This document shows, piece after piece, positions 6,367 through 48,178 of a stretch of 53,942 nt of DNA. The notes under the pieces are model-generated. The model saw nothing but the letters and a program-made list of their open reading frames with translations, was not told the origin of the DNA and made no database searches. Positions within the stretch are counted from its first letter, which is position 1, and the number at the start of each line of letters is the position of its first letter. This stretch comes from Macrostomum lignano (lineage: Eukaryota). A program made the position numbers and the translations under genes. The stretch spans positions 1-53,942 of the forward strand of contig NIVC01001858.1 of the NCBI GenBank assembly GCA_002269645.1, in the 5' to 3' direction.

Positions 6367-7261
6367 GGCCGCCAACTGGGAGCCAAAAAACAGCTCAATT
6401 CATCAGCTAAATAGGAAATTTTCAGTTTTATTGCCAATCGAGTCTCGACTCAACTCGGAACAATTTGTGTCCTTGAGCAAGACGCTTAACTCTGCATTGC
6501 TTCAGTTCACTCAACTGTAAAATGGGTGCCAGCATTGAGGGTGTGTCTGGCGACCCCCCAGTCACATCTGCTCATAAGGGCAGGTGTAATCAATAATTAT
6601 ATTCCCACTAAAGCGAAAATCGAAGCCAAGGGCCCCAAGGCGACATCGGGGCCATTCAAAATAGATCCGCATTATTTTGAAGTGCGTCAAAACGGGTCCT
6701 TGGTACTAACCAATTACCAGCAAAATTTGCATGAAGCTAAACAAATATTCTATTTATTAGTTCCTATATTATAATTCAAACTCACACGTCAATCCTACTC
6801 ATTAGTTAAGTAGTATGCTGTAAGTTTTTTATAGTTATATTTGCAAAATCAGCTTCCTTGTGCTACTAAATTTTATAATTTTTCACTTGAAAGGTGCTTT
6901 GTTTGCCTATGTAATCTCTGGGTTCGTGTGGCTTCAGTTGTAGAGTAAGATTACGCTTTTTTTTAGATATTAATCAAATTTTAATTAGCTAGATAAAATA
7001 TTTTAGTAGCATTGGAATAAGCTGCACCCTTTTCAAATTTGTTTGTCATTCCTTCTGTTAGTTTTTCTATAGTGTCGTATTTTCTTACTGCAACTGTCAA
7101 TCACCTTCTGCACTACTCGCTCCCATTATGCTGTGCCCAGATAGAAATTGAAATACAGTCTGCATACTTTTTGCATGCAATTTATGGACACGGATTTCTA
7201 TCTTGAAAATGGAAGCTGGTAAATATGCTGATCATATGTTCGAATTTGGCCCTTTATCTTG

Positions 7262-9070
7262 TACTCCAGTCAGTGTCTCTTCTACTCCAGTCAGTGACTC
7301 TTCTACTCCAGTCAGTGTCTCTTCTACTCCAGTCAGTGACTCTTCTACTCCAGTCAGTGTCTCTTCTACTCCAGTCAGTGTCTCTTCTACTCCAGTCAGT
7401 GACTCTTCTACTCCAGTCAGTGACTCTTCTACTCCAGTCAGTGACTCTTCTACTCCAGTCAGTGTCTCTTCTACTCCAGTCAGTGACTCTTCTACTCCAG
7501 TCAGTGTCTCTTCTACTCCAGTCAGTGACTCTTCTACTCCAGTCAGTGACTCTTCTACTCCAGTCAGTGACTCTTCTACTCCAGTCAGTGACTCTTCTAC
7601 TCCAGTCAGTGTCTCTTCTACTCCAGTCAGTGACTCTTCTACTCCAGTCAGTGTCTCTTCTACTCCAGTCAGTGTCTCTTCTACTCCAGTCAGTGTCTCT
7701 TCTACTCCAGTCAGTGTCTCTTCTACTCCAGTCAGTGTCTCTTCTACTCCAGTCAGTGTCTCTTCTACTCCAGTCAGTGTCTCTTCTACTCCAGTCAGTG
7801 TCTCTTCTACTCCAGTCAGTGACTCTTCTACTCCAGTCAGTGACTCTTCTACTCCAGTCAGTGTCTCTTCTACTCCAGTCAGTGACTCTTCTACTCCAGT
7901 CAGTGACTCTTCTACTCCAGTCAGTGTCTCTTCTACTCCAGTCAGTGACTCTTCTACTCCAGTCAGTGTCTCTTCTACTCCAGTCAGTGTCTCTTCTACT
8001 CCAGTCAGTGACTCTTCTACTCCAGTCAGTGACTCTTCTACTCCAGTCAGTGTCTCTTCTACTCCAGTCAGTGTCTCTTCTACTCCAGTCAGTGACTCTT
8101 CTACTCCAGTCAGTGACTCTTCTACTCCAGTCAGTGACTCTTCTACTCCAGTCAGTGTCTCTTCTACTCCAGTCAGTGTCTCTTCTACTCCAGTCAGTGA
8201 CTCTTCTACTCCAGTCAGTGACTCTTCTACTCCAGTCAGTGACTCTTCTACTCCAGTCAGTGACTCTTCTACTCCAGTCAGTGTCTCTTCTACTCCAGTC
8301 AGTGTCTCTTCTACTCCAGTCAGTGTCTCTTCTACTCCAGTCAGTGTCTCTTCTACTCCAGTCAGTGTCTCTTCTACTCCAGTCAGTGTCTCTTCTACTC
8401 CAGTCAGTGACTCTTCTACTCCAGTCAGTGACTCTTCTACTCCAGTCAGTGACTCTTCTACTCCAGTCAGTGTCTCTTCTACTCCAGTCAGTGACTCTTC
8501 TACTCCAGTCAGTGACTCTTCTACTCCAGTCAGTGTCTCTTCTACTCCAGTCAGTGTCTCTTCTACTCCAGTCAGTGACTCTTCTACTCCAGTCAGTGAC
8601 TCTTCTACTCCAGTCAGTGTCTCTTCTACTCCAGTCAGTGACTCTTCTACTCCAGTCAGTGACTCTTCTACTCCAGTCAGTGACTCTTCTACTCCAGTCA
8701 GTGACTCTTCTACTCCAGTCAGTGACTCTTCTACTCCAGTCAGTGACTCTTCTACTCCAGTCAGTGACTCTTCTACTCCAGTCAGTGACTCTTCTACTCC
8801 AGTCAGTGTCTCTTCTACTCCAGTCAGTGACTCTTCTACTCCAGTCAGTGACTCTTCTACTCCAGTCAGTGACTCTTCTACTCCAGTCAGTGACTCTTCT
8901 ACTCCAGTCAGTGACTCTTCTACTCCAGTCAGTGACTCTTCTACTCCAGTCAGTGTCTCTTCTACTCCAGTCAGTGTCTCTTCTACTCCAGTCAGTGTCT
9001 CTTCTACTCCAGTCAGTGTCTCTTCTACTCCAGTCAGTGTCTCTTCTACTCCAGTCAGTGACTCTTCTAC
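7262..9070. repeat. 21-bp minisatellite actccagtcagtg(t/a)ctcttct, ~86 units, two variants
   Basis: Near-perfect tandem array varying at a single A/T position. It produces the long repetitive ORFs on both strands. Confidence 0.97.
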
Positions 9071-9385
9071 TCCCCCCACACTCCAGTCACAGCCTCCCCC
9101 CACTCCAGTCACAGCCCCCCCACACTCCAGTCACAGCCTCCCCACACTCCAGTCACAGCCTCCCTCGCACTCCAGTCACAGCCTCCCTCGCACTCCAGTC
9201 ACAGCCTCCCTCGCACTCCAGTCACAGCCTCCCCACACTCCAGTCACAGCCTCCCTCGCACTCCAGTCACAGCCTCCCTCGCACTCCAGTCACAGCCTCC
9301 CCACACTCCAGTCACAGCCTCCCTCACACTCCAGTCACAGCCCCAGTCCAGTCACAGCCCCACTCCAGTCAAAGCCCCACTCCAA
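9071..9385. repeat. Related minisatellite cactccagtcacagcctccc(c/tcg)
   Basis: Abuts the 21-bp array and shares its actccagtca core. Confidence 0.9.
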
Positions 9386-10372
9386 TCACAGTATCTACAG
9401 CCAATGACTAGTGTTCACTATCACATTTTAGGTCACTTTTTCAATGGCAGGGACAGTCAGGGGTAACTCGTATGTGGGCTCCTGCAAATCCAAATTTGCG
9501 TTAATATTTCCTGTCCATCATCTGCTCTCTCTGAATACAAATCATCCATATCTTGTGCAAGCAAAATAGAAAATATAAAATTTTAATGTTAATTTATCAC
9601 AAGATTTAAAGTACAGATTATCAGATTAGCAGTAAAACAAAAAATCGGGGGAGTTGGGGTTGAGTTGAGGACTTTACAATGGGTCCATGGTGTCTTGGTA
9701 CCTCCTGTTGAAGGTCCAGAAGCTCCGCCTGGATGAAGGTCAGTGGCTACCGAAGTCAGACACATGTGGTCGACGTGCTGATGAAATTTGAAGGCTTGGC
9801 AAGGCTGCACTGAGGTGCAGTGCTGATTGGCGCACAGGGGTGTACTGAATACACTGGCGCTTATGGGAAAAATCCGACCTTCTGGCAGAGTTTTCGAATA
9901 CCTTGATGGTCCGGACGGCTGGCGACTTGATTCTTGTTTGAGAAGGTGCGCAACAAACCGCTGGCCCGTGTTCTTGAATTTCGTGTGCCTGCATTGCTCC
10001 GTTCCCGTTCTCTTGGTTGTTTGACAGGCGGAAAATGGCCGTTAGATTTATTGGTTTCTGTCCGACACCGACTAAACTGCGGTTATCAGCAACAATAAAT
10101 CCATAACTTTATTTCATTCAGTCTCCGAATAAAGTAAAAATTTGTTTTGGTAAAACAGCTGAACAGATGTTGAGCAGACTTGAGTCTACAACATACAACG
10201 AAATGAGGTCATTTTTCGTCACCTTTTCTTCGCCCTACAGCACCCGGGATTTTGCTTTCATAAGCTCAAAATTTCAATCGTCAAAATTATGAAACTTTTT
10301 TAGCTGTCCTGGTGGAAGTGACTGGCTAAGATTTTTCGAGGTTGCGCACTTTGAGATTGAGCTCATAGGGTG

Positions 10373-11008
10373 CAGGGGCGTCGCCGGGGGTCTTATGGTT
10401 GAGGTGGTTGGGGGGGGACAAAGTCAAGAATTCTACATGGACAATATTTTGAGAATAGGTGTTGTTAGCACTCATTTAGGCGCCCCAGGCAGGCACTCAC
10501 ATTGGCGCCGCAGGCACTCATTTTGGCGCCCCAGGCAGGCACTCACATTGGCGCCGCAGACACTCATTTTGGCGCCCCAGGCAGGCACTCACATTGGCGC
10601 TGCAGACACTCATTTTGGCGCCCCAGGCACTCATTTTGGCGCCACAGGCACTCATTTTGGCGCCACAGGCACTCATTTTGGCACCACAGGCACTCATTTT
10701 GGCGCCACAGGCAAGCACTCATTTTGGCGCCACAGGCACTCATTTTGGCGCCACAGGCAAGCACTCATTTTGGCGCCACAGGCACTCATTTAGGCGCCCC
10801 AGGCAGGCACTCACATTGGCGCCGCAGACACTCATTTTGGCGCCGCAGGCAGACACTTATTATGGCGCCACAGGCAGGCACTCATTTTGGCGCCGCAGAC
10901 ACTCATTTTGGCGCTCTGAAGCAAAACTATTGATTTCCACAACGGATCACAAAGTGGGGTGGAGGGGGGCAAAGCGTTGGCGTGTCCCCTATAGTTTTTA
11001 CGCCCCTG
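10373..11008. mobile_element. hAT-like non-autonomous element (MITE) with internal ~21-bp tandem repeat
   Basis: TIRs caggggcg (10373-10380) and cgcccctg (11001-11008). Flanks atagggtg / atggggtg match 7/8 as a TSD. Internal array ggcactcattttggcgccaca at ~10480-10920. Confidence 0.65.
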
Positions 11009-11271
11009 ATGGGGTGGCGGAGCAGCTCTGCGGTGAAGGCCCCTGGTTCGATCCCGTGACCGCCCACATTCGTTTGGGACTTCTGCATAAAAACTGGCAC
11101 ACCGGAGCACACCGGAATGGCCAGAATTGCCATCAGAGCTGGTTGTGGGAGGATGTCGCCAAAGGCGTTTCGCCAAGGTGGACAACCTAAAAATGAACTG
11201 CACAAGTATTTAGGGCGTTGCTGAACAGTTGCAGGATAAAACTCAAACCAAGGTCAGCGCAGTCCATTGTT

Positions 11272-11587
11272 TCAGAACTCGTCAAATTCCTCGCCGAACT
11301 GGTCGAACTGATCGCAGCCGATGTCCTCGCAGCCGATCTCGGTCTCCGGGAACATGCTGGCCTCCGGGTTGGGCTGGAAGTCCGGCTTGGCCGTCTGGTT
11401 CTGCAACGCGAAGAAGTCGATGGGATCGGCGGAGGAGCCGGAGCTGGCGAAGAACTGATGGCCGCGCAGTTCTCTGATGCCGGCGCGGCCGCAGCCGAGG
11501 CGGAGATTCAGACGGACGCTCAGCAGGCCGGAGATCATCCCGAACATGTGCTGCTGATCGCGATCGCCGCTCTGCCTGACTAACAGC

Positions 11588-11627
<40 letters not shown>

Positions 11628-14600
11628 TGTCATCGCCAAATTTCACGGCCAGCTCCCGAAGGTCGTGCATGTAGTGAGAGAGGCCTGCGTGGCTGCGCTC
11701 GACATTGAACATGGACTGGCCGGTGAGCATCTCGTACATGAGCACACCGAAGGCCCAGTAATCCACCGATGTTGAGTAGCCGCTGTACGGATCAAGTCGG
11801 GCTGAGGGATTTCAAGCAGAGGATTTTAAAAGTGCATGCACGTTGAAGGTGGGCTAAAAGAGCTGACGGGAAGCGTTACTAGGGGTCTGTGGTTGTGTGC
11901 GAGCTTAATGCAATCGGTTGTGAGCTCTCGAAGCTTAGTTTTAGGGATTTTTTGGAAGGCCCGTCTGCAGTTGGGAGGCTTGGTGAATTTTTTAGGTAGG
12001 CGAGTGTACATTGGAGAGGGTTAGTGGGGTCTGCATTGGAAGAAGCGTGTACATTGAAGAGGGCTAGTGGGATCTCCATTGGAAGAAGCATGTACATTGA
12101 AGAGGGCTAGTGGGATCTCCGTTGGAAGAAGCATGTACATTGGAGAGGGGTAGTGGTGGGGTCTGCATTGGAAGAAGCGTGTACATTGGAGAGGGTTAGT
12201 GGGGTCTGGATTGGAAGAAGCATGTACATTGGAGAGGGTTAGTGGGTCTCTGTACCGAAATGCGTGTATAGATGTACATTAGGGGGTCAAGAAGTCTCTA
12301 ATGGCAGATCAGAGTCCGTTAAGGCAGATTAATTCGATTTTTAGATTGGTATTTCATTAAGACTAAATTATGACCAAATGCTATGCGTTCAGTGCAGATC
12401 GTAAATGACAAAAACGTTGAGAGCCTCACCGCAGCCGTCAGCGTCGGTTGTTGACCAGCGAAACAGGCACTGCAGCATCTCTGGCGCCATCACGTCCGGA
12501 CAGCCAATCATAGTGTAGGCTCGGCCGTCTGCGCGGGACAGGAAAATTCGATTCGTGAGAAAATTCAACAGCTTCTTGGATAGCATCAAGGCAGCAGCGA
12601 CAGATACAGAATTACTCAACTGAGACTATAGACAACAATTGACCTGCAACCATTTAGCTGAAGCCATGGAGCAGTCGTACGCACTCACACATGACATAGA
12701 ATAAAACGCCTGAGACGAATTGGAGCTCTCAGCTGTTGTCCTATCACAGCAGGGGGGGGGCTGAGATCTGAGAGCTGCTGCCCAATCACAGCAGGGGGAG
12801 CTGAGAGCTGCTGCCCAATCACAGCAGGGGGCTGAGAGCTGCTGCCCAATCACAGCAGGGGGGCTGAGAGCTGCTGCCCAATCACAGCAGGGGGAGCTGA
12901 GAGCTGCTGCCCAATCACAGCAGGGGGAGCTGAGAGCTGCGGCCCAATCACAGCAGGGGGGCTGAGAGCTGCTGCCCAATCACAGCAGGGGGAGCTGAGA
13001 GCTGCTGCCCAATCACAGCAGGGGGAGCTGAGAGCTCAGATCTGCTGCCCAATCACAGCAGGGGGAGCTGAGAGCTCAGATCTGCTGCCCAATCACAGCA
13101 GGGGGAGCTGAGAGCTCAGATCTGCTGCCCAATCACAGCAGGGGGAGCTGAGAGCTCAGATCTGCTGCCCAATCACAGCAGGGGGAGCTGAGAGCTCTCA
13201 GCTTTTAGGTGGCCCTCATGGGAGTGAATCGGACGACAAGTCAGCTAGATTGCATTTGTAGGAACCAGAAGACAAATCAAGATTTTATCCCATAACCTTG
13301 CAACCGTTTAGCGCAGGTAAAGTCGGTCAGGTACACGTAGCCTCGATAATCGAACTGGATATTCTCGCTGCGCAGATCTCGGTGCACGATTCGCAGGTTG
13401 TCCAAATACTCGAGCGCCAGCACCACCTGTGCGGCGATGAAGCGGATCTCCTGCACGCTGAAGCAGGTCCCCACCGAGGCCAGGCCTCGGCTGCCCTCCT
13501 CCAGCTCCTGGGCGACCTCCGTGACCTTCTTGGCGGCGGCACTGCCAGCGGGCCGAATAATCTGAGCTCGCATGGCAATGTGCTGCCGCAGGGTGCCTGC
13601 TCGGCAGTCGGGCTTCACAAAGTACAGGTTGCAGTGGTCCTTGAAGCTGTCGATCAGGCGGCAGATGAACGGGCTGCGCATGGCCTGCTGCAGCCGCCTG
13701 GCCTCCAGCAGTTGGCCGATCAAATTCACGCCGCTGCGACGGCTCTTGTGAACCAGATGAGCCTGTTGGAAACGGGTGCTCACGTGCATATATCCAGTGA
13801 GCTAATCCAAACTGAGCTAATCCAGTGAGCTAATCCAAACTGAGCTAATCCAGTGAGCTAATCCAGTGAGCTAATCCAGTGAGCCAATCCAGTGAGCTAA
13901 TCCAGTGAGCTAATCCAGTGAGCTAATCCAGTGAGCTAATCCAGTGAGCTAATCCAGTGAGCTAATCCAGTGAGCTAATCCAGTGAGCTAATCCAAACTG
14001 AGCTAATCCAGTGAGCTAATCCAGTGAGCTAATCCAGTGAGCTAATCCAGTGAGCTAATCCAGTGAGCTAATCCAAACTGAGCTAATCCAGTGAGCTAAT
14101 CCAGTGAGCTAATCCAAACTGAGCTAATCCAGTGAGCTAATCCAAACTGAGCTAATCCAGTGAGCTAATCCAAACTGAGTTAATTCAGTGAGATAATCCA
14201 GTGAGCTAATCCAGTGAGCTAATCCAGTGAGCTAATCCAGTGAGCTAATCCAAACGGAGCTAATCCAGTGAGATAATCCAGTGAGCTAATCCAAACTGAG
14301 CTAATCCAATGAGCTAATCCAAACTGAGCTAATCCAGTGAGCTAATCCAAACTGAGCTAATCCAGTGAGATAATCCAGTGAGCTAATCCAGTGAGATAAT
14401 CCAGTGAGCTAATCCAGTGAGCTAATCCAGTGAGCTAATCCAAACTGAGCTAATCCAGTGAGCTAATCCAAACTGAGCTAATCCAGTGAGCTAATCCAGT
14501 GAGGTAATCCAGTGAGCTAATCCAGTAAGCTAATCCAGTGAGCTAATCCAGTGAGCTAATCCAGTGAGCTAATCCATTGCGATAATCCAGTGAGCTAATC

Positions 14601-15205
14601 CAGTGAGCTAATCCAGTGAGCTAATCAACTAAGATAATCCAATGAGCTAATCCAATGAGCTAATCCAGTGAGCTAATCCAGTGAGCTAATCCACTGAGGT
14701 AATCCCCTGAGATAATCCACCGAGATAATCCACTGAGCTAATCCAGTGAGCATAAGCACGAGATTACCTTGCGGATGACCTCCAGCGTGTAGGTCGGCAG
14801 GTGTCTCCGGTCGTTGCCTCCGGTGTTGAAAGATTTCGCAGCCGCCGCGGCCGCAGCCGCCGCAACCGCCGCTGTCGGCGTGTTGGCCGCCGCCGGAGCC
14901 GTCGCCGCCGCAATCCTGCCGCCTTCGGAGTCGAACGAGTTGCTGCCCTCCTCGGCGGCAGGCTGCGCTCCGTCCAGCTCCAGCACGTTGTTGCAGTCGC
15001 CAGGCAGGTGGAATTTCGGCCTCGCGGCGCACAGAATATAGTGCCCGAAGTCGGCCAGCTTCTCCGTTGCGATGTACTGCCCCCGCTTCTCCGAGCGCTG
15101 CTGGGCGCGAATGTACCTGATGGCAAACTGGCCGCGCTCCCGGCGAAGCCAGGCCCGATAGTCGTTGCGGCTCTTCACTATGCAGTCAGCCATAGCGATG
15201 GCCAT
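11272..15205 (-). CDS. PKA catalytic-subunit-like protein, probable pseudokinase (510 aa, 4 exons)
   Basis: Exons 15205-14768, 13762-13297, 12528-12430, 11801-11272 join in frame (1533 nt) with GT-AG sites. Motifs SPFICRLIDSFKDHCNLYFV, AAQVVLALEYL, IVHRDLRSEN, LTDFTCAK, MAPEM, VDYWAFGVLMYEMLTG, and terminal EEFDEF* as in PKA-C. Confidence 0.88.
12000..12255. repeat. Intronic minisatellite, ~43-bp unit tgtacattggagagggttagtggggtctgcattggaagaagc
   Basis: Tandem repeats in kinase intron 3. Confidence 0.85.
12745..13200. repeat. Intronic minisatellite, 33-42-bp unit ctgctgcccaatcacagcagggggagctgagag
   Basis: Tandem repeats in kinase intron 2. Confidence 0.92.
13792..14750. repeat. Intronic minisatellite, 13-14-bp unit gagctaatccagt / gagctaatccaaact
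   Basis: Tandem repeats filling kinase intron 1. Confidence 0.95.
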
Positions 15206-15429
15206 GTTGTTGTTGGATTTGATTATGAAATATGGTTGAAATTATTTTTATTGTATTAGATAATAAAAAAGTTTATTCCTGAAGCTAATAGCCACTAAAT
15301 CGAAGCTTTTGACCATAGACGTTGCGGTTGTGCTCGAAGTTATCATCTTAGTTGCCTTTTCTACTAAACTCTACAATCTCAATGTTGTGCGCATTTAAGT
15401 ACATCTGTTCGTGGTTAAATACATTAGGC

Positions 15430-15828
15430 TATAGGTATCTAATGCATTGATTGCACAGGCCATAGGAATCTAATGCATTGATTGCACAGGCCATAGATTT
15501 CTAGTGCATTGATTGCACGGGCCATAGATATCTAATGCATTGATTGCACAGGCCATAGGAATCTAATGCATTGATTGCACAGGCCATAGGTATCTAATGC
15601 ATTGATTGCACAGGCCATAGATTTCTAGTGCATTGATTGCACAGGCCATAGATTTCTAGTGCATTGATTGCACAGGCCATAGATTTCTAGTGCATTGATT
15701 GCAACAGGCCATAGATTTCTAATGCACTGATTGCACAGGCCATAGATTTCTAGTGCATTGATTGCACAGGCCATAGGTATCTAATGCATTGATTGCACAA
15801 GCCATAGATATCTAATGCATTGATTGAA
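15430..15828. repeat. Minisatellite, 31-bp unit gcattgattgcacaggccatagatttctagt
   Basis: Tandem repeats between the kinase start and the lectin stop. Confidence 0.92.
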
Positions 15829-15993: not shown

Positions 15994-17379
15994 TTAGTCG
16001 AACGGGCTGACGCACTGGCAGAGCACGAAGTTGTCAGCCCGTTCTTCCTTGTCGTTGAACTCAGCCCTGGACTTCTCCAGCACGATGCGATTCTGGTTCA
16101 CATCATTGTCGGGATCGTCAGACTCCCACAGCGAGCGGCTCATGTTCACGGGCAGGCCGGAGCCCAGCCACACCCAGCCCTGGTCCGGCTCCACGCTGCC
16201 AGGTGGTTGATAGGCGTTTAGCCAGGCCTGGTCGTCCCAGGGATAGTTGCCAATGGTGACAGCGTGGTCCATGTGCGCCCGGTCAACCAGTTCAGCCAGG
16301 CGCGACAGGCCGCCGAGAGACAGGCAGTGAGTCTGCAGTTTCACAATGACGCAAACATCTTTTTTATAAAGTTTTAAAGATAGAGAGTATCTCGCCAGAC
16401 TCTTGCGCTAAGGTACCGATCCCGTGCGAGAGGCATTACTGCCCATTCCGCCGACTCCCCTGAGCAGGCACACAAGCGCGCGGATACGTACGCAGGCACA
16501 CACTCACACAGGAGTGTACAGCGGCCCTAACTTTATATTATCGTTAGGCATGTACACTTCACTGCGCCTTGGGGGGTTGGCTCTCAAGGCCGCTAATTGC
16601 ACGAGCAGAGCCAAGCCGAGATTCCAATTCAGCCCCAAATTAATGTGACTGCACTTGGAATCGAGCCTGGGTCGCTGGCTCACACAGGGTGCACAGCGGC
16701 CCTGACTTTCTAATCGGCAGACAGGCTGGCTTTCGTGGGTGTGAATCGCCACGACAAGACCGGCTAATTTTCGTGTACAGGCTCCAAATATAATATCATT
16801 GACGCTCCTTAAGGGTCAGAGTTAAGCAGAATTAGACGCGGTTAGTACATTCAGCCAACTCAAAAATAAAAATGCTAAGCTGCGCACCCGAACCACTTAA
16901 AACACGTGAATTTGTGTGCCTTGGTCACTCACGTAGGCTCCGTCCCAAGTATAGTGACTCTTCACCAGCTTGAATTTCGTGCCAAAGAAGTCGCTGCCAA
17001 AGCCGCGGCCGCACAGCCCACCCGGCTGGGCCACTCCGGCCAGACGGCGGACAAAGACCTCGGCCGGTCGGCTCTGGCACGACTTCACCGACCGGACGCG
17101 CCGGCTGAACGCGCCGAAATTGAATCGGCGACAGCGAGCCGGAGCAGTCAGAATGGCGAAGGCCAGGCAGCTGGGCTCCTGGGCGCACCTGAAGGAGCAG
17201 GCCTGCGGATCGGCGATGCCGGGCAAGTCGGGCAGGATGAAGCGAGGGTCGATGCAGTGCAGCACCTTGGTGGTCAAGCGGTCGAAGTTCGTCCGATTGG
17301 AGCAGCCAGCCGAGCAGATGACCGACAGGCAGGTGCAGCTAAGAAACAGAAACAAGAGAGTGACAGCTATTGAGTGCAT
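15994..17379 (-). CDS. Secreted protein: signal peptide + PAN/apple-like module + C-type lectin-like domain (261 aa, 2 exons)
   Basis: Exons 17379-16933 and 16332-15994 (GTGAGT donor, CAG acceptor, in frame). Hydrophobic N-terminus MHSIAVTLLFLFLSC; PAN-like ACSFRCAQEPSCLAF; CTLD-like YTWDGAYTHC..LAEL..WL..WVWLGSG..LWESDDPDN..VLCQ. Confidence 0.75.
16420..16680 (-). mobile_element. tRNA-derived SINE copy (head truncated) in lectin intron
   Basis: Near-identical to 44715-44962. B-box ggctcgattcc on the minus strand; A-box missing. Confidence 0.8.
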
Positions 17380-31537: not shown

Positions 31538-33225
31538 TCAAGCATCGCCAATGAGGGTCAGCAGAACTCTCTCGTAGTCGCCCGACGTGTCGCCACGGAT
31601 CATCACGGCGAGACTTTCGCCGTACTGTCGCTGAAAAGCGGCCTTCACGGCTGGCATGTCAGACTCGCAGAAGCCGATTATGGTTCGCTGCAGGCGCCTG
31701 TCGTTCGTGCCCGCGCCCTTCATGCTGCGGTACAGCATGCCAGCCACGTGTCTGCAAGGTGAAGAGACAGCGTAGACCTAAAATCATACTTTTTTGATGA
31801 TTCACCTCTTTCTAAAAGGCCAATAGGCTCGTAGTTAAGGGTTATTTCAAAAATCGAAGCATTCGTCACTTCATAAACCGAACACTGGGTTAAAAATAAA
31901 GCCAGAAGATGGACACGTGGCGCTACCTACTGCATGAACTTCCCACTTGACTAACACGTCACCTCAGAACCGACACTAAACCACAGGGCAATTTGACAGC
32001 AGTTAGACTACTTCAACGTAGAATTTTTTAATTGAACTTGCCTGGCCGGATCTTCAGCGAATGAGACGACGCTTAACAACGCATTGCGATAGTCGCCGCT
32101 GGTCTCCGCTGCGATAGCATCCTGTAGGCCGCGATGTCTTTTCTTCTTGTAAGCATCGGCGACGGCGGCGACGTGAGCGGGCGATCGGCTGCACAGCAGG
32201 CGGTTCAGGGTGTCCTCGTCTGTGCCAAGACGGCCCTCGCCTGCTCTGTAGAGCGTCTCAGCGTCTGCAGCCACCGCTTCCGGCCGTACCGGACCCTCCT
32301 CGCGACCGGCGGTGAGCAGTGACACCAGCACCTTGCGGAAGTCGCCGCTGGTCTCTGATCGAACGTCCGACTCCAGGTTTCGATGAAACACTGCGAGTGC
32401 AGCGTGGAAGTTAGGGAAATAATTTATAGTTAGAAATTATGCAAATTCGAACAGGTAGTCATCGTATCAATACTCACGTCTCTCAAATGCCTCCTTTATA
32501 GCTCTGATCTGATAGTTACTTCTGGTCGTCAGGATGTCTATCAGCGCCTCTTCATCTGTTCCAATTCCCTGTTGCGGACGCAGAAATACGTAATGTTTTC
32601 GTACAGATTTAAGATTTTTTAAACCAAAAGCACGTCTTGACAATTTCATTTTGGCGAATATGAATAACAGATTTCACCTTTATTCACTTGATATTATGGC
32701 TACTCAAGAATACTCATGGGAATCTACTTTACTGAATAACAAGTGATGCTGTTTCATAAATACAACTACAACTCATGTATTAGTTCGATTTAGGATTGAA
32801 TTTGCTAATGACTGCTACTGAAAAAAAACTGCTATAACTACTTGCCCTTGTGAAGCAATCCAAATGCAATGATGTCAACTACATGTATTCGTAGAATGAT
32901 GATCTGAAAACAGATTTTAACTCTATAAAACTCCCACCTCCATTGCCTCGCGCAGGCAGATTGCGTCAAACTCGCAGAGCACGTAGCACAAAGACTTGCA
33001 CGTTTTGTAGAAACTGCCACTGAGCTCAGACTTGAATGCGTCAACCAGCTCCTTGCCGTAGGCGGTCTTGAAGGCGCGCGCGATCTCGGCCCGCTGATGC
33101 GACGGTCGTCTAGCCATGACGTCAATGATTGTCTTCTCATCCGTGCCGAGGCCTTTCATAGCCTTGTAAAGTCGGCCGGCTTCTGTCTGAGCATTCAATG
33201 GCTGGTCGGCTCGAGACATGGCCAT
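31538..33225 (-). CDS. Annexin, 4 repeats, 313 aa, 4 exons (intron 3 is GC-AG)
   Basis: Exons 33225-32938, 32568-32478, 32390-32042, 31751-31538 join in frame (942 nt). MKGLGTDE..SELSG, MEGIGTDE..SETSG, GEGRLGTDE..AETSG, MKGAGTND..GDTSG. Confidence 0.95.
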
Positions 33226-34439
33226 GCTGACTGGACAGGTCTTGCTAGTTGATGTGTGCAGAGCAGTGGGCCAAGTTTGTAGCCAAAACTGTTTATTATA
33301 GCCTTAGTTGTAGCTAACCTCACGAATTGCGCGCTTTAATGGCGTTAAAACTGGCGCTATTTCACTCAATTGGCAACTGTTGTAACACTAACAGTCCGTA
33401 AAGTCGATTTGATAGCCATGCTGGACGTTTTTTGCCGTTGAGGTGGAGGGAAGACAACGTACAGGGAAGTCATTGAACAGGCAATGACTTGTTCACTTCT
33501 GCACTCCTGCCACCCCAATCTGGCATGCACTGGGGGACACTCCGTACAGTACACGGAGAGGCAAAAATTGCGAATACTGGAAGCCGCGAGTGCGTTCAGC
33601 ATGCTGCCAGAGCCAATGAAATACTGACTGCCTGCTTGCTTGGAACGAATTGTGAAGTGAATCGGGAGGGAGAGAGACGTGGCGATAAAGAATCAGGCAT
33701 GAGAGAGACAGGGTTGTACGATTGTACACAAGAGACTTGCCTAAAAAGCACACGTCTTGATTTTACTATAGAGACATAGCTGCCAGTTGAAATTGAATTT
33801 ACCCATATCTGTGGCAGCCTCTGTATCCAAATATACCGTCAGATTAAGATTAATGCAGTCGAACTGCGATGCATAACAGTCTGCAGTCGATTTGAAGGTC
33901 ATCTCGCTTTCATCAAGGGGCAGGATTCGGCAAACTCCAACCCGCGAAGCTTCTCTATCCGACCCCCCCGGGTCTTTTCAAACTTCACAATAGCAATCCG
34001 CCCCGTTGATGGTCTATGTCTCTTCTCAGCTCTCTTCCCTCTAATCTCAATAGAGACATTTAGAGACGAAGATATAGACTACGCCGCACCAGTTTCTTTA
34101 TTCACAGAAACGTAAATTAAAGCCGATCGGATTCTGCAGCCAAATTCATATACATGCAATACGGATCTAAATGCGCCAACTACTCGCGCCTAAATTATGT
34201 CCTCTAAAATTCTCATTATGGAAGAATGAGATTAGAATGAGAAAGTCATTAGAATGAGATTATGGAAGAATGAGAAAATCACAACTTTTTATTCCTAAAT
34301 TGTTTTCCATTATATTCTTTTCTAGGAAGATCAGCTCTGTCAGTCAGTCCGTTTCCAATATTAATATTAATATTATTATTATTACTACATGTATTAGTAT
34401 TTACAATTATATAAATAGACACTGGCATGGGTGGTCAGC

Positions 34440-35370
34440 GGAGCACCCGCTAGTGGAAACCAGCTGAGTCCAGCCTTAAGCCTAGCTGCAGACTGAGGGG
34501 GTAATTAAAATAGTGGAACCGGATGCCCAGGGCATTGCGCAGGAGGTGGCGATGGCGGGCCTCCAGGCTTGCCTCACGATCGTGCAGAGCAGTCATACAG
34601 CCTCCAGCCCGTAGGTCAGCACCGGCCGTCTCAACTGCCAAATCGGAATAGGCCGCGACCTTCATTCAGGCTGTCGGTGGCGAGCCGGCAGTTAAAGATG
34701 GAGCGAAGATGGGAGGCCACCTTCTGGTGGGAGGTAACCAGCTGATTGCGGTTGTTGACAATATGGCACCCGGATCAGTGACCAGGATGCCCAAGATATT
34801 TAACCTGCATAGTTAATTACACGGGGCGATAGTGTTTCCGTCCATGTAGAAGCAGAAGCAGGAGGAAAGGTGGCAATGAAGGCAGCGTACATGTACCTCC
34901 CAGCTGTCTTGCCGTAGCTGATGTGGAGCCCCACGCGCTTCCCCTCGTCAGCCAGCCTTTTCTCCGACGCTTTTTGCAGCTCTGCGCAGCTTCGGGGTTG
35001 CAGCAGGTAAGCGCAATGTCGTCGGCGTACATGTAGCTAGGCAGAGGTCAGCTTTTACAAGCTGGAAAGCGGGAGCTAGCTACCGCAAGGCACACTTCTA
35101 GCCATCTCTATGAAGTGGCTATCATAGCCACAGCGCCAGCAGCATGACGTAGTACATAGTATACAATTCAACAATTCAAATGTAGGGCCCATAGTAGAGT
35201 GAGTCTTGACAAAAGCCTTGGACTGGTTGTAGAGGTTCAAGATCCCCAGAACCAGCAGCTAATTCCATGCGACCATGCTGCTGGAGGAGCCAGGCAATGG
35301 CGCTCGACTGACGGAGTCAAAAGCTTGTAGACAGCAGAACAAGTCGCTGCGATCCGCGGTGCTACCTTTC
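34440..35370 (-). mobile_element. Decayed non-LTR retrotransposon reverse transcriptase (RTE/CR1-like)
   Basis: Broken frames give QAFDSVSR, MYADDIALTC (35032-), KYLGIL and LEARHRHLLRNALGI in the expected order, with many stops and shifts. Confidence 0.8.
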
Positions 35371-36322
35371 TAATGCTTCCATAATTAAATTATGTAGCTT
35401 AAATATGCATTAATATTAGTGCTGTAATATGCTTTAAAATTTTATGCTACCAGAGTGATGGGAGCTTTAAATGCTGAAAAAAACAAAAAAGTCTGAATTT
35501 TAGTTTAAATGAGTCTTAAAAATTAAATGTGAGTATTCCCCGAAATAACCTCCCATGTCACTATTGTACTATGTATACATCCCATCCCCGGTATCTGTCA
35601 ATAAAAAGTCATTAATTACATGTATAACAGTTCCCACATGCCAGACTAAACCGTGATCTCGATAATTGTTTTTTTATTTTTGATAATTGATTTAAGAATA
35701 AGGTTTTTATTGTAACAACTAGTAAATTAGATTAAAACTACAAACCTAGTAAGTAGTAAAAACTGTTTTGTTTCAATTTCAATTTCAACCAGTTGTTAGA
35801 GTTGTACATGTTCAAACCAGATAGGCCTACTAGCAAGCAGATCATGAAGGAAAAAATTATTGCAAGCTCCTTCAGATAAGCCTATTCTATCTATAAGATC
35901 ATGTAAGGCAGGATCTGCTAGGATAAAAGTACAGATTGTTTTCCAGGGCTATTCAATCTCATCTTATCTACATTACAACTAGGCAACTAGCATGTGGATT
36001 GTGGAATCATGCCATTTGTTTAGTTTGTTATGTACACTAGCTATGTACATTTTAATGTCAGTTTAATGTTGGTAAAAACCAATCAAACAAAGTTATATGC
36101 ATAGAAAATATAAAACCAAAACAAAGGATAGGCCCTATTATCAGTTCAGGGTAGCCATTAGCAGCAAGGCATTAGTGAATAAAAACTTGCATTACCTAGT
36201 ATATGATCTTTGAATACAATGCAAACCTTGTTAAGTATCTATATTGCTATCTTGCTAATATGCCATTAGGAAAATGCAGTCTCTTTTTAAAGCCAAAATA
36301 GATAGTTTTGGTTAGTGTTCTA

Positions 36323-36726
36323 TAGAGGTCAGATAGGATCCCGATCCCAATCCCAAAATCCCAGGATCCTAGGAAAATTGTATTCCTGCAGGACCAGGAT
36401 CCTAATCCTAAAAAACACAAGAATTGGGAATAGGTCTTTTGATCAAAAGTTTATAGAATTAGTGATTAAATTAAATATATTTTGTTTTAACTTATATTCA
36501 TTATCTTATTACTTTTTTATTATAAAACTTTGCATCTATTTTGTTGTTTTACTTTTGATCTTGACATTTTTTGCTCAATTTTGTTTAACTTTATATGGAC
36601 CTATGAACTACAATACACCAAAAGACCTGATCCCAATTCCTGAATCCCGATTCTGATCCCGATCCCAAGAAAAAATTATTCTTGATCCCGATCCCGCCCA
36701 AAGATTTCAATCCCATCTGACCTCTA
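36323..36726. mobile_element. MITE with TIR tagaggtcagat and internal gatccc subrepeats
   Basis: tagaggtcagataggat ... atcccatctgacctcta. The flanks give only a weak (5/8) TSD. Confidence 0.55.
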
Positions 36727-37381
36727 ATGTTTTGCCATAAGGGGGGTCCATGTGCCATAGCCGTAGCCGTGGCTTATATGGCTTATAAAATATGGCTTAT
36801 TCCAATTCTTTGTATTATGTAGCCATAAAGACCCCAATATTACTATATTCCTATAGTTTTCATAGCCATAACTATAGTTTTAACAAAAAGTCTAAGAAAC
36901 AAAATATTTTGAATCAAAAAGATACCTAGTGTTTAAACAAATGCAAATTAAGGTAGAAAATAAAACAAGCACTCAATTGCCTTTGTAAGATTATATTTCA
37001 TCTTTTTTATAAAGAGTAACAATACTTAATCACTATTGAAGTGAAAGTACTAGTGTTAAACTTTTTACATTAATAAAAGTTTGAGTTTGCTAGCATTTTA
37101 TTATACTTTATTAGGTATAATCTATAAGTTTCTAAGTCTATAATAGAGTTTACCAAAGTATCTTTGTTTTATTTTACTTGTTTCTAATGTTCATTTTTTG
37201 TTTTTTATTAATAAGTATAGCTATTAGAATCTATGGAATGTGACAAAAACTATCATATTTCCATAGTTGTAGCCATAAGAGCAGCTATTTACCATAGTTA
37301 TATCCATAGTTATTGTGAGCACTTATTGTACTATATTTGCCATAAGATCTTATAGCTGTAGCCGTAACTATGGCGGAACAT
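36727..37381. mobile_element. Probable MITE with TIR atgtt(c/t)(c/t)gccata and subterminal ccatagc repeats
   Basis: atgttttgccata ... tatggcggaacat, flanked by ta on both sides. Confidence 0.4.
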
Positions 37382-37667
37382 TAGTTTTGGCCAATCTTTT
37401 CTTACCAAATCAATTATACAAAGGAAATATAAACATTTATCAAGGCTAGGCTATTATGCATACTATAATTATCTAAGCTATAAAAATTGAATGATATTCA
37501 AGATGTTGCTTAATTATCAATGTAATAAAAATCAAATGCAACATTTTGTTTATGGCCTAAATGTATACATTAATAGTCTATTATAAGAAACAATAAAAAA
37601 ACCAGAAATATTGATTGAATAATGAATTTTATTTACTTAATAACTAATAATAATATTCTATTGTACC

Positions 37668-37972
37668 CATACATGCGCAACCTCTAAAATTTGGTTGGCC
37701 ATGCGACTTCCTTTTAACAAAAATATGCGACATAGTTTTTGGCCAAAAATGTGACTTACAAGTAAAAAAACCCTAGCATAAAGAAAAATTAACGCTAATT
37801 TGGGTAAACGGCAGGAGTAACTATAACTGTCTTATTGAGTCAAAATGCCTCGTCAGCTACTTAGTACTACTACTTGGGTATTTTTTGGGTGGGCTTTTTT
37901 TGCAACTTCCTTGTTTGGCCGCCAAATCGGTCGGCCGCATCGGCCGACTTGGCCGCCTGTTGTGCATGTATG
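37668..37972. mobile_element. 305-bp TIR element with perfect 8-bp TSD carrying a 28S rRNA-derived segment
   Basis: TIRs catacatgcgcaac / gttgtgcatgtatg. TSD attgtacc at 37660-37667 and 37973-37980. 37802-37865 matches the conserved eukaryotic LSU segment (53/64 by hand against the remembered consensus). Confidence 0.85.
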
Positions 37973-38224
37973 ATTGTACCATTTCAAGATATACCTACCT
38001 AGGATACTTTTTGACATTATATTCCTAATATGAGTTTTCTTACCTTTGCAAGATTAATTGTTTTTTAAATGCAATAAAAATATAGTGCACTTAGATGCTA
38101 TGGCCAGGCTAATTCATTATAATTTGACACTTTAATTATAATTTATCCATTAAATGACATTGTCTATAATACCTAGTGAGTTGTGAGAGGCATTATTGCT
38201 CATTCCACTGACTCCTCTAAGCAG

Positions 38225-38484
38225 GCATACAAGTGAATAGATACATACACAATCATATACACAGGCAAATACTCACTTAGTAATCTACAGCAGCCCCAAC
38301 TTTATTTATCATTAGGCATCTACACTTTACTATGCTTTGGCAGTTGGCCTTCAAGGGCATTAATTACACGAGTAGAGCCAAGTCAAGATTCCAATTTAGC
38401 CCCAAATTAATGTGACTGCACTTGGAATTGAGCCTGGGCTGCTGGCATATCAGAGCGCCACACTTGACCACTGGGCTATGACCC
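38225..38484 (-). mobile_element. Older, AT-drifted tRNA-derived SINE copy
   Basis: Same body as the other copies. A-box tagcccagtgg on the minus strand. Several CpG-to-TpG/CpA changes. Confidence 0.78.
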
Positions 38485-38700
38485 CCTATTAATCAGTTCA
38501 CCATATGTAAATAGATTCTGTTATAGCTAGTATTTAGTTTTATTTTTCTATGGTGGTAACCAACAAAAGAGCAATTACTATTTTCCACAGATACAATAGT
38601 TATATGATCTGCAGCTGTAGCCATGATGACAGTGAATCAGAAGTTTCTGACATTACAAAAGACTCACTTTATTTGGCTTGCTCAAACTCCAGCCAGAGTC

Positions 38701-39171
38701 ATGTCAACAGCCGCCCGGCGTCGCCTAATGAAAGACCTACAGATGATGCAGAAGGACCCGCCGCCAGGCGTTGGTGCCTGCCCCACCGACGAGAACATCA
38801 TGGTGTGGAAGGCGGTCATTCTCGGGCCAGACGACACCGCATTCGAAGGCGGAGTGTTCAAGCTCAGCATGACCTTCACTGAGGAGTATCCGAACAAGCC
38901 GCCAGCCGTGAAGTTTCTCACCTCCATGTTCCATCCGAATGTGTACGCTGACGGCTCCATCTGCTTGGACATCCTGCAGAACCAATGGAGCACCTCATAC
39001 GATGTACGCGCCGTGCTGACCTCCCTGCAGTCGTTGCTAGGCGATCCGAATCCACACTCGCCAGCCAACATGGCCGCAGCGGAGCTGCTCACCAATAACT
39101 GTCGGGAGTACACTGAGCGGGTGAGCCGCATTGTTGAGGACTCCTGGCGGCATCGGGACGACAAGCTGTGA
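38701..39171 (+). CDS. Intronless Rad6/UBE2A/B-like ubiquitin-conjugating enzyme E2 (156 aa)
   Basis: [49 protein letters not shown] (active-site Cys intact), [12 protein letters not shown]. Confidence 0.92.
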
Positions 39172-39289
39172 TGCGCGAGCGTCAGCTGATATTGATTTCC
39201 CTGTGATCCATGCTTTCCATTGTTTTCATTTCAACTGCATTATGTCTATCGCTGGTCAATATATCATTTTTAGGTCAGCAACCCTCCGT

Positions 39290-39856
39290 CTGAATGGATG
39301 GGCCAGTAACCCTTCGTCTGAATGGATGGGTCAGTAACCCTCAGTCTGAATGGATGGGTCAGTAACCCTCAGTCTGAATGGATGGGTCAGTAACCCTCCG
39401 TCTGAATTGATGGGTCAGTAACCCTCCGTCTGAATGGATGGGTCAGTAACCCTCCGTCTGAATTGATGGGTCAGTAACCCTCAATGTGAATGGATGGGTC
39501 AGTAACCCTCCGTCTGAATTGATGGGTCAGTAACCCTCAATGTGAATGGATGGGTCAGTAACCCTTCGTCTGAATGGATGGGCCAGTAACCCTTCGTCTG
39601 AATGGATGGGTCAGTAACCCTCAGTCTGAATGGATGGGTCAGTAACCCTCAGTCTGAATGGATAAGTCAGTAACCCTCAGTCTGAATGGATGGGTCAGTA
39701 ACCCTCAGTCTGAATGGATGGGTCAGTAACCCTCCGTCTGAATTGATGGGTCAGTAACCCTCAATGTGAATGGATGGGTCAGTAACCCTCCGTCTGAATG
39801 GATAGGTCAGTAACCCTCCGTCTGAATGGATGGGTCAGTAACCCTCCGTCTGAATG
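39290..39856. repeat. Minisatellite, 28-bp unit tgaatggatgggtcagtaaccctc(a/c)gtc
   Basis: About 20 tandem units starting ~120 bp after the E2 stop codon. Confidence 0.95.
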
Positions 39857-40254
39857 AACAAGGTAATTTGAGTGAACCAATTTAATCTGTAGTTATAGAC
39901 TTCACAATTCATAATTTAACCAATCGACTAATTCAGTACGAATAGCATTGTACTGCTATATACTTTTATGTTTAATAATGAACAAATGCTTGTTCCAATA
40001 ATTTGAATACAAGTTTGTTGTGTAATTATTTATCCTGTGTCCATTTTTTAATAAAGAAACCATTCAAACTTCATTTTTCTTAAGCTGTTCGTCTGAAAAA
40101 ATCATTGATTAAAATGAAGCACTTGTAGCTAATATTGTTTTATTTTTTGCTTCTTTTGCATTAAACAAAATTATATATAATATGTATACTGCAGAAATTA
40201 TACTACGAGTACAGTATCAGTACAGAAAGAATTGGGGAATCTAAGTAGGCTAAG

Positions 40255-40812
40255 CTAACTCGCGCATATACTACTGTTATCGACCGAATCAAACGAAGGG
40301 ACGAATACACAAGTGGCGTCAGTGTACAAGTCCAACCGCAGGCTTTGATAGTTCTCGGCAATCATGGCGGCAATTATCATCGGGCACGGATAATCTTTCT
40401 CGTCTTTGGATGCCGTGTTGCAGACTTTGCCTTCTGGCAGCAGCTCCCAGCAGTGGTAGGCGCCGCTGCTTTCCAGCTGCTGACGGTCCCTCTCCATGTC
40501 CGGCTGAAACTTTAGCCAGCTATGCGGGTCCTTGAACTTGACAGCCACGGCGTACACCTTGCAGTGCTTGTGCACTCGTGCCGGCACTCGCACAGTAAAG
40601 TTGGGCTTCGTCTTCCTGTCCAGCTCGCTGCACCAGGCGTGGTACATGCGAACCTTTCTAAGCTCTCCGCTCGCCTCATCGTCCAGATGGAAGAGGAAGC
40701 ATGCAACTTGCTGATCGAGTGAGTAGCGCACTTGGACAGCAGAGGTGCACTCATACTTGTCGCCGAGTCGTCTAATATAGGTCTCATTTGTGCTTAATAC
40801 GATTGGGAACAT
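40255..40812 (-). CDS. Uncharacterised 185-aa protein (orphan paralog 1)
   Basis: Intronless ORF with coding-like composition. Clear protein-level homology to 42815-43339 with diverged DNA. Confidence 0.75.
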   Translation of the reverse strand: MFPIVLSTNETYIRRLGDKYECTSAVQVRYSLDQQVACFLFHLDDEASGELRKVRMYHAWCSELDRKTKPNFTVRVPARVHKHCKVYAVAVKFKDPHSWLKFQPDMERDRQQLESSGAYHCWELLPEGKVCNTASKDEKDYPCPMIIAAMIAENYQSLRLDLYTDATCVFVPSFDSVDNSSICAS

Positions 40813-41064
40813 GCTGAGTTACTGGCTTCACGAATACAGCTGATCGCCATCGGATTCCCCGCCTTCAGAGCCGATCTTGTTGGCTGTAGACGGCGGCCGC
40901 CAAGAATTTGCCAGTCCGGCGGGCGAGCTTCGATCCGGGGGTTGCCTTAACTGGTCTATCAAGTATCCAGCTAGCTGGCCAAAATTCGAGTTTGACTACT
41001 GAACTTTTTGACAGCCCCCGGCCGAGCCCGCCGCAGGCGGCAACCTTGGATCGGCCATGCCCGA

Positions 41065-41525
41065 AAGCGGCCACCAAATATGGCGCGCCTGACAGCGCCT
41101 CGCTTGCTCAGATCCGATCTCTGCGGCCGCATCCTCACCTGCGCATTCCATTCAGATTTCAGACGAGCCGTAGCCAGCCTCTCCGACTGAGGATCAGTCG
41201 CCGCACTGAGTGCGAAGCGTCTCAAGCAACCCGGAGTCGGCGGAAACGCCCAGAAAGTGGCAGCTGTGAGCTGACTGCGGCGCGTGCGCGCGCGCCCCAC
41301 CCACCGTTGCCAATCCATGTCTTGGCCGGTAGTGGGTGGGGCGCGCGCGTGCGCGCCGCGGTCGGCTCGCAGCTGACCACTTTCCTGGCGTCTCCGCCGT
41401 CTCCGAGCCAGTCTGAGAGGCTGGCTCCGGTTCGTCTGAACCGAATGCGAAAGTTAGGCGCGGCGCAGAGATCGGAGCTGAGAAAGCGGGCGATGTCAGG
41501 CGCGCCATATTTGGTCACCGCTTGT
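41065..41525. repeat. GC-rich imperfect palindrome (foldback) upstream of orphan paralog 1
   Basis: accaaatatggcgcgcctgaca..gcgcgcgccccaccca on + mirrors tgggtggggcgcgcgc..tgtcaggcgcgccatatttggt. Centre ~41315. Confidence 0.85.
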
Positions 41526-44643: not shown

Positions 44644-45000
44644 GATTTTTTATTAGAGGCAGGGGGTTGTGTGCACCCTGGCGCACTTTAAGCGACATAG
44701 GCACACAACCGGCGAGAGGCATTACTGCCCATTCCGCCGACTCCCCTGAGCAGGCATACAAGCCCGCGGATACGTACGCAGGCACACACTCACACAGGAG
44801 TGCACAGCGGCCCTAACTTTATTTATCGTTAGGCATGTACACTTCACTGCGCCTTGGGGGGTTGGCTCTCAAGGCCGCTAATTGCACGAGCAGAGCCAAG
44901 CCGAGATTCCAATTCAGCCCCAAATTAATGTGACTGCACTTGGAATCGAGCCTGGGTCGCTGGCACACCAGAGCCTGCGCTAGACCGCTGGGCTACGCCC
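44644..45000 (-). mobile_element. Full-length tRNA-derived SINE flanked by a ~119-bp direct duplication
   Basis: Minus strand: cgtagcccagcggtctagcg (A-box), ggctcgattcc (B-box), body, aataaaaaa tail. Flanks 44526-44643 and 45016-45134 are near-identical. Confidence 0.85.

Positions 45001-46443: not shown

Positions 46444-48178
<1,735 letters not shown>

Follow-up and report, generated by a model that had tools for sequence, protein, structure and literature searches.

The DNA analysed here, referred to hereafter as the window, is a stretch of 53,942 nucleotides of the Macrostomum lignano genome (the whole of contig NIVC01001858.1, assembly Mlig_3_7, GCA_002269645.1). Its minus strand carries, between positions 15205 and 11272, a gene of four exons for a kinase-like protein of 510 residues related to the catalytic subunits of PKA (PKA-C). 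Alignments and structural models show a predicted protein in which the kinase fold, the C-lobe and the AGC tail have been kept and the putative nucleotide pocket has been dismantled. In what follows, residues of PKA-C and of the M. lignano protein are each given in their own numbering.

The kinase gene and its transcripts

Joining of the four minus-strand exons yields an open reading frame (ORF) of 510 codons followed by TGA (1533 nt). All three introns have GT..AG borders, and their phases, from the first to the third, are 0, 1 and 1. Exon 1 (14768-15205; ATG at 15205-15203) holds codons 1-146 and encodes a predicted long N-terminal helix (residues 2-40), an unstructured Ala-rich region of low complexity (residues ~40-134) and strand beta3, YTLEVIRK, in which the position of the invariant Lys72 of PKA-C is occupied by Glu142 (GAG, 14782-14780). 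Intron 1 (13763-14767; 1005 nt) is nearly all satellite, a 13-bp tandem repeat of ~72 copies at 13792-14751, and a scan with a PKA-like profile found no hidden kinase-like exon in it. Exon 2 (13297-13762) runs from codon 147 through the first base of codon 302. It covers alphaB/alphaC (Ala167, 13702-13700), beta4-beta5 (Lys196, 13615-13613), alphaD, an insert of 32 residues (215-246), alphaE, the catalytic loop HRDLRSEN (Asp275, 13378-13376) and the DFT motif (13324-13316).

Intron 2 (12529-13296; 768 nt) contains 12 copies of a 40-bp tandem repeat (12768-13196). It is followed by the short exon 3 (12430-12528; 99 nt), which encodes Thr307 in GRAYTM (12514-12512), the P+1 loop IGCPDV, the APE motif (Glu318, 12481-12479) and the start of an 18-residue insert. 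Intron 3 (11802-12429; 628 nt), with 5.6 copies of a 43-bp tandem repeat (12005-12246), lies inside this post-APE insert. Exon 4 (11272-11801) comprises codons 335-510 and the TGA (11274-11272). It encodes the remainder of the insert, alphaF with VDYWAFG (Asp348), Glu358, the alphaG/alphaH region with a poly-Q insert (residues 394-404; 11625-11593), Arg435 and the AGC C-tail ending in EFDEF (Phe507, 11286-11284; Phe510, 11277-11275). The flanks of the gene are also dominated by tandem repeats, with ten copies of a 46-bp unit at 10468-10914 and 13 copies of a 31-bp unit at 15426-15826; the repeat unit differs in each of the five arrays in the introns and flanks.

Both GenBank and UniProt already have entries for its product, which carries no name there. 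GenBank entry PAA63282.1 (BOX15_Mlig031951g1, 'hypothetical protein, partial', 520 residues), annotated on contig NIVC01001858.1 at 15235-11272, consists of PYFIIKSNNN followed by the exact 510 residues. Its coding sequence (CDS) begins 30 nt upstream of the ATG, at 15235, and is flagged 5' partial, a label that merely denotes a short 5' untranslated region without an in-frame stop. For this assembly, the annotation in GenBank draws on nothing but RNA-seq data and assembled transcripts (StringTie, TACO, a de novo transcriptome and TransDecoder; PMC5730564), and because PAA63282.1 is thereby derived from transcripts, all three junctions of the kinase gene have transcript support. The uninterrupted four-exon frame of 510 residues had been put forward in a preliminary description of the sequence, with RNA-seq proposed as confirmation of its junctions; the identity to this RNA-seq-derived CDS bears out both frame and junctions. 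Two M. lignano fragments that come from another gene set and an independent assembly (ML2), UPI0007A1A94A (238 residues) and A0A1I8HUX7 (142 residues), are identical to the protein, TYTLEVIRK included, and an error of sequencing at the critical beta3 codon is therefore unlikely.

The composition of the CDS points in the same direction. It has no in-frame stop, as compared with a mean of 14.4 and a minimum of 4 in 2000 shuffles, and its GC content is 0.82 at third codon positions (GC3) and 0.44 at second positions (GC2), against 0.44-0.56 in the introns. The kinase ORF is far beyond what chance produces. Two antisense ORFs on the plus strand, 13298-13828 and 14801-15259, were considered as genes and rejected, since a CDS with so high a GC3 is expected to give rise to such ORFs. 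None of the marks of a pseudogene that we looked for (disruption of the frame, lost splice sites, absence of introns or of transcripts) was found: the 510-codon frame is intact, it is interrupted by three GT-AG introns, and the CDS is transcript-based.

The ATP site and the N-lobe

Residues were mapped with a profile hidden Markov model (HMM) built from 37 full-length PKA-like proteins, against which the M. lignano protein scores 195 bits, in two pieces. Motif equivalences were cross-checked between this HMM, phmmer matches to the PDB and MAFFT alignments. Glu142 stands at the position of the beta3 lysine, Lys72, in three independent alignments (YAMKILDK becoming YTLEVIRK). The alphaC glutamate, Glu91, aligns with Ala167, with a glutamate, Glu166, one position before; this register is firm, because the conserved PF motif lies at exactly the expected distance from position 91. 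Among 400 kinase domains of relatives, position 72 is Lys in 345 of 345, position 91 is Glu in 352 of 359 and position 52 is Gly in 324 of 327, and by alignment the M. lignano protein is an outlier even when set against its nearest relatives.

Changes extend over the rest of the pocket. Both residues of the adenine sandwich are replaced, Ala70 by Thr140 and Leu173 by Gln282. The gatekeeper Met120 has become Lys196, and the hinge residues Glu121 and Val123 have become Pro197 and Cys199. Glu127, a ligand of both the ribose and the P-3 residue, is replaced by Thr203, and Leu95 of the regulatory spine by Gln171. In the catalytic loop, (Y/H)RDLKPEN has become HRDLRSEN, so that Lys168, which contacts the gamma-phosphate, corresponds to Arg277. 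The glycine of DFG, Gly186, is Thr295 (DFT), and in the P+1 loop, where CGTPEY has become IGCPDV, Thr201 and Tyr204 correspond to Cys311 and Val314. The preliminary description had recognised K72>E, E91>Ala, HRDLRSEN, DFT and IGCPDV, all of which are upheld by the profile and the other alignments. The dismantling of the ATP site that it deduced from them appears more thorough than its list, which lacked A70T, M120K, L173Q, E127T and L95Q. By the sequence definition, which asks for the loss of one or more of the beta3 Lys, the HRD Asp and the DFG Asp, the protein is a predicted pseudokinase through loss of the beta3 lysine, in agreement with the earlier suggestion of a catalytically dead or atypical C subunit.

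The residues that have been kept include His273-Arg274-Asp275 of the catalytic loop with Glu279 (E170) and Asn280 (N171), Asp293-Phe294 (D184) and Lys298 (K189). Thr307, the equivalent of T197, is present together with its phosphate anchors R165 and K189, as are Gly310, Pro312, Asp313 and Ala-Pro-Glu318. Further towards the C-terminus, Asp348 (D220), Trp350 (W222), Gly353, Glu358 (E230) and Arg435 (R280) are retained, and the regulatory spine keeps His273, Phe294 and the equivalent of L182. This agrees with the earlier observation that the HRD Asp (Asp275), the T197 equivalent, APE, DYWAFG and the terminal EFDEF are conserved.

A mini-profile of beta1, the Gly-rich loop and beta2 gave zero matches in residues 1-138 (shuffled versions reach 6.8 bits), the motif GxGxx[GAS] is absent from the N-terminal part of the protein, and the alignment to the PKA-like profile begins only at residue 139. 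MAFFT, run twice, paired the loop with NTGGND (126-131, within KSFNTGGNDR, residues 124-133), with a shortened beta2. Two AlphaFold runs, one from a mixed alignment of 38 sequences and one from a PKA-rich alignment of 61, both assigned a predicted local distance difference test score (pLDDT) below 50 to residues ~40-134 and built no beta1-beta2 hairpin there. In the same two models beta3, alphaB/C, beta4-5 and the C-lobe were at 90 or above, the first model exceeding 90 for most of residues 140-210 and 250-310. The preliminary description had equated GTGSFG with LADFG (residues 50-54). Neither LADFG nor NTGGND has statistical support, and both were rejected as established homologies of the loop; the absence of a mini-profile match, the preference of MAFFT for NTGGND and the lack of structure over residues 40-134 in both models all speak against the first. 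The safe statement from the alignments is that the Gly-rich loop is gone or unrecognisable.

An insert of ~70 residues between beta2 and beta3, also described previously, is only one of two possible readings and depends on the same unsupported equivalence. Relative to PKA-C the protein has six insertions of 6 to about 75 residues, including Ala- and Gln-rich tracts. The insert before alphaE had been put at ~35 residues; it is present and measures 32 residues. The poly-Q tract stands as described, with 11 Q. To these are added an insert of 18 residues that follows APE, takes in residues ~322-339 and spans intron 3, and one of 6 residues before alphaC, both of which had been missed. The alphaG region carries an insert of 4 residues.

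Because exon 2 starts right after beta3, a canonical N-lobe might in theory be provided by another first exon, and the preliminary description had raised the possibility of transcripts using another exon with GxGxxG and a VAIK-type lysine. No such exon was found in the six-frame translation of the 54-kb contig, searched at maximum sensitivity with the PKA-like profile; exons 2, 3 and 4 alone matched. Upstream of the kinase gene the contig continues for 38.7 kb, and downstream for 11 kb.

Ancestry, relatives and genomic surroundings

The protein matches the Pfam kinase family (PF00069, Pkinase) over residues 166-451 with an E-value of 9e-32 and 110.9 bits, well above the cut-off of 31.7. The match covers the profile from position 47 onwards only, the N-terminal part with the Gly-rich loop and beta3 being unmatched. 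Among the PDB sequence matches listed by phmmer the best are all PKA-C, at ~98-103 bits, followed by apicomplexan PKGs at 80 bits, and identity is 31-35% to PKA-Cs as compared with 27-30% to PKC, S6K and MAST. The AlphaFold2 model has a pLDDT of 72.6 and a predicted template modelling score (pTM) of 0.70. In Foldseek its top matches are PKA-C structures (target-normalised TM-score 0.68-0.76) with PKG catalytic domains interleaved, and the probability is 1.00 to both PKA and PKG. In a neighbour-joining (NJ) tree of 287 trimmed columns, in which the protein sits on a very long branch, its sister group is exclusively PKA or PKA-like in 86 of 100 bootstraps. The C-terminus, ...GEEFDEF followed by the stop, places FDEF-COOH in line with the KEFSEF-COOH and KEFAEF-COOH of PKA-Cs, and no phospho-acceptor follows it. 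The claim of homology to PKA-C is thus supported by sequence, fold and the terminal FxxF.

Intron positions were compared with those of one gene, the PKA-C gene of Trichoplax (sp. H2). Intron 1 lies two codons upstream of its phase-0 intron after Lys78, and intron 3 lies at the site of its intron in APEIILSK|GYNKAVDWW, but in a different phase. The shared sites suggest descent from an intron-bearing gene of the PKA type, and the location of intron 3 within the post-APE insert hints that these 18 residues arose through shifts or sliding of splice sites. Judged from sequence, the nearest family is PKA-C, which is probably also the ancestor; the phylogenetic support is moderate and not decisive. 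With the catalytic motifs changed as set out above, the product is best described as PKA-C-derived, and would not count as a canonical or catalytically competent member of the PKA-C family.

Close relatives were sought among 1.84 billion cluster representatives. An exhaustive HMMER search returned, at more than 50% identity, only the gene's own fragment; the remaining matches were ordinary AGC kinases with 30-49% identity over the matched stretches. Two matches at ~1e-40, P0062 and P0065, were rejected as relatives, being mis-assembled tandem PKA models. When the full protein was used in a word-index search, poly-Ala and poly-Gln dominated the result; a search with a core free of low complexity found only the gene's own cluster and kinases at 35% identity or less. 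The kinase-matching members of that cluster are all from M. lignano and identical to the window; the cluster also holds two unrelated peptides of 42 residues. No Macrostomum entry, and so no canonical PKA-C of M. lignano, was present among the best 120 matches. The gene is apparently lineage-restricted, known so far from one species.

Indirect evidence for selection over most of the history of the gene, which we take to be good, comes from the gene itself. Identity to PKA-C has fallen to about one-third, yet there is no stop or frameshift, insertions are in frame only, the splice sites are used, a codon-position signal is present and fold-critical residues have been kept, which argues for long-term constraint. 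The clean frame had already been taken as a sign of selection; this is reasonable for the long-term history and has no bearing on the latest generations.

The right-hand part of the window (33000-52000) is collinear with NIVC01003836.1:50861-71385 at ~96-97% nucleotide identity. This duplicate fits the recent genome duplication in M. lignano. In a search for a second genomic copy of the kinase gene, the sister contig was found to end ~3 kb past an annexin gene, before the position of the kinase gene.

Other features of the window were also noted. A 261-residue Cys-rich protein without a Pfam match is encoded upstream of the kinase gene on the same, minus strand (15994-17379), ~760 bp from the kinase start; its hydrophobic N-terminus resembles, by eye, a signal peptide. 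Given their tight spacing and orientation, the two genes could form a common transcriptional unit with trans-splicing. On the other side, at ~11000-11060 and thus ~210 bp 3' of the stop of the kinase gene, a string that resembles a tRNA and includes a box-B motif (GGTTCGATCCC) is possibly derived from a tRNA or a short interspersed element (SINE), and ARAGORN and Rfam (E<=0.1) report nothing there. A long satellite with a 24-nt unit (7203-9411) is open in three frames, with ORFs of 626-734 residues in which units such as STPVSVSS and LLLQSVS recur; the ORFs are mechanical and not evidently a gene. An intronless ORF on the plus strand (38623-39171), annotated on the window contig, encodes a Rad6/UBE2A-like ubiquitin-conjugating enzyme (UQ_con, 2e-50). 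The gene calls for NIVC01003836.1 do not include it, though the DNA aligns there, and it may be a retrogene or reflect a difference in annotation. Two neighbouring intronless orphan genes on the minus strand (40255-40812 and 42815-43339) encode proteins of 185 and 174 residues with 40% mutual identity and no Pfam match; both are also on the sister contig, and the ORF at 42815-43339 has the same encoded product on two records of GCA_002269645.1, NIVC01001858.1 being one of them.

Interpretation and comparison with known systems

The explanation we prefer, and hold to be probable, is that this is a transcribed gene derived from an intron-containing AGC kinase gene of the PKA-C type, whose product is now a pseudokinase and probably acts by binding. 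Such a protein would not bind MgATP in the canonical manner nor phosphorylate at a useful rate, and would function through binding rather than phosphotransfer. Its C-lobe may adopt an active-like state, with Thr307 held by the HRD Arg and the Lys189-equivalent anchor, and with a core of the APE-Arg280 pair and Asp220. Partners or peptides with basic, Arg-containing motifs could then be docked through the acidic residues that bind the P-2 and P-6 arginines (Glu279, Glu358 and Asp313), next to a P+1 loop that has kept its Pro, and the C-terminal FxxF would clamp the N-lobe in cis, as in PKA. A scaffold that docks substrates or pseudosubstrates, a decoy or an allosteric modulator appears the likeliest and most economical mode of action. 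The disordered Ala-rich and Gln-rich inserts may provide additional surface for interaction. As a speculation from the sequence, a salt bridge between Glu142 and Lys196 might fill the adenine pocket.

Several observations weigh against this explanation. The catalytic base and both metal ligands (Asp275, Asn280 and Asp293) are all kept; a fully dead kinase seldom has all three, and atypical catalysis is conceivable. The N-lobe is judged from alignments and low-confidence models only. In the NJ tree the protein grouped strictly with mouse PKA, to the exclusion of other AGC kinases, in only 48 of 100 bootstraps, as is to be expected of a very long branch. No ortholog or paralog was found among the 1.84 billion representatives. 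Finally, Mlig031951 was not found in the full-text literature searched or in the supplements of the M. lignano papers searched, which give no expression level or tissue information for it.

The retained catalytic residues are the starting point of the alternative that survives best, an atypical but active kinase that would bind ATP in a non-canonical way with the help of a compensating basic residue, as WNK does, and transfer phosphate via Asp275, Asn280 and Asp293. The Asn171 equivalent and the DFG Asp are there alongside the catalytic base, the activation-loop Thr keeps its anchors, the gatekeeper Lys196 and Arg145/Lys146 lie near the pocket, and several proteins first labelled pseudokinases were later found to be active. 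The losses, however, are several and occur in concert. No Gly-rich loop can be detected, A70T and L173Q would turn the adenine sandwich polar, Glu127 has become Thr, Lys168 Arg, the alphaC Glu Ala and Leu95 Gln, and neither AlphaFold model folds the N-lobe with confidence. Rescue of the WNK type requires an intact Gly-rich loop carrying the lysine, and none is seen. We regard an active enzyme as unlikely.

Action within the PKA pathway itself, as a dead C subunit that binds R subunits and/or PKI and tunes cAMP signalling, appears less likely still, and we give it little credence. In its favour are PKA-C ancestry and the retention of Glu279, Glu358, Asp313, the Pro of the P+1 loop and Thr307, and RII-type subunits bind C without ATP. 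Tight binding of PKI and RI requires MgATP, however, to which this protein probably does not bind, and the docking surfaces have changed. The hydrophobic pocket for the PKI helix appears lost (Tyr235>Gln363, Phe239>Asn367), Arg133 and Glu127 are replaced by Ala209 and Thr203, the R-docking residues Tyr247, Lys213 and Trp196 have become Met379, Ser341 and Tyr306, and the alphaG region carries its 4-residue insert. The idea, advanced in the preliminary description, that the protein could sequester R subunits or PKI is thus weakened by the predicted loss of conservation at Y235, F239, Y247, K213, R133 and E127.

Equally hard to sustain is a functionless relic, that is, a duplicate under neutral drift in a neopolyploid genome, still transcribed and with its frame open by luck or through a recent loss of constraint. 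The genome does contain many recent duplicates, such as the 96-97% identical sister contig; neither the search of 1.84 billion representatives nor the word search found an ortholog or paralog, the gene is in no expression table searched, and its long low-complexity Ala/Gln tracts and repeat-filled introns would suit a decaying copy. An identity of ~33% without a stop or frameshift in 1.5 kb, with all indels in frame, would be unlike neutral decay. The core has been kept (APE, D220, W222, R280, H273, F294 and L182), the contrast between a GC3 of 0.82 and an intron GC of 0.44-0.56 indicates that the codon-position signal is maintained, and the splice sites are intact and used. Least to be expected of all is a nucleotide-independent decoy C subunit plugged by Glu142-Lys196, which would dock PKA-R or PKA substrates through its Arg-binding C-lobe and phospho-Thr307, possibly in response to cAMP, and buffer PKA signalling; no PKA-pathway regulator of this kind was found in the literature searched.

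The interest of a pseudokinase of PKA-C origin lies in its parentage. Few animal proteins are normally as conserved as PKA-C, the textbook kinase, and in a paralog with the C-lobe and tail of PKA but without any of its ATP site nature would have tested what the C subunit can do apart from catalysis. M. lignano is a free-living, regenerative flatworm in which RNA interference and transgenesis make the gene tractable. The significance is limited by the frequency with which pseudokinase paralogs arise and by the restriction, so far, to a single species with a duplicate-rich genome.

With PKA-C the protein shares the bilobal fold, the N-terminal helix, the AGC C-tail with FxxF-COOH, the Asp residues of HRD and DFG, Asn171, T197 with R165 and K189, APE, D220 and W222, R280, E170 and E230. 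It differs in having no Gly-rich loop, in K72E, E91A, A70T, M120K, L173Q, E127T, K168R and G186T, in the changed residues for docking of PKI and R, in its six insertions and in an identity of 31-35%, as against ~80% between the canonical PKA-Cs of metazoans.

Among pseudokinases and atypical kinases, KSR1/2 and ULK4 (general knowledge and PMC7586955) belong to the same class, in which the beta3 Lys is lost and the HRD and DFG Asp are kept, and in which signalling through conformation or binding is expected. Their families fall into other groups of kinases, their conservation extends across animals, their partners are known, and ATP is still bound by several of them; the M. lignano protein is PKA-C-derived and has, in addition, lost the Gly-rich loop and adenine-pocket residues. 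Tribbles and STK40 (PMC7586955) resemble it in their degraded Gly-rich loop and in the use of the C-lobe as a platform for docking of substrates or adaptors. Tribbles, which falls within the CAMK group, has nevertheless kept the beta3 Lys, has a degraded DFG (SLE) and ends in a COP1-binding tail, whereas the M. lignano protein keeps the DFG Asp and the AGC FxxF tail. WNKs also lack the canonical beta3 lysine and yet are active, but they have an intact Gly-rich loop with a substitute Lys (beta2), the alphaC Glu and the adenine pocket, none of which is seen here. The Fasciola kinome paper describes five PKA-family kinases in the fluke and lists no PKA pseudokinase, and in the literature searched no PKA, PKA-like or AGC pseudokinase was named as such and this gene was not mentioned. 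Lineage-restricted pseudokinase paralogs are a known kind, and the descent of this one from PKA-C is the notable point.

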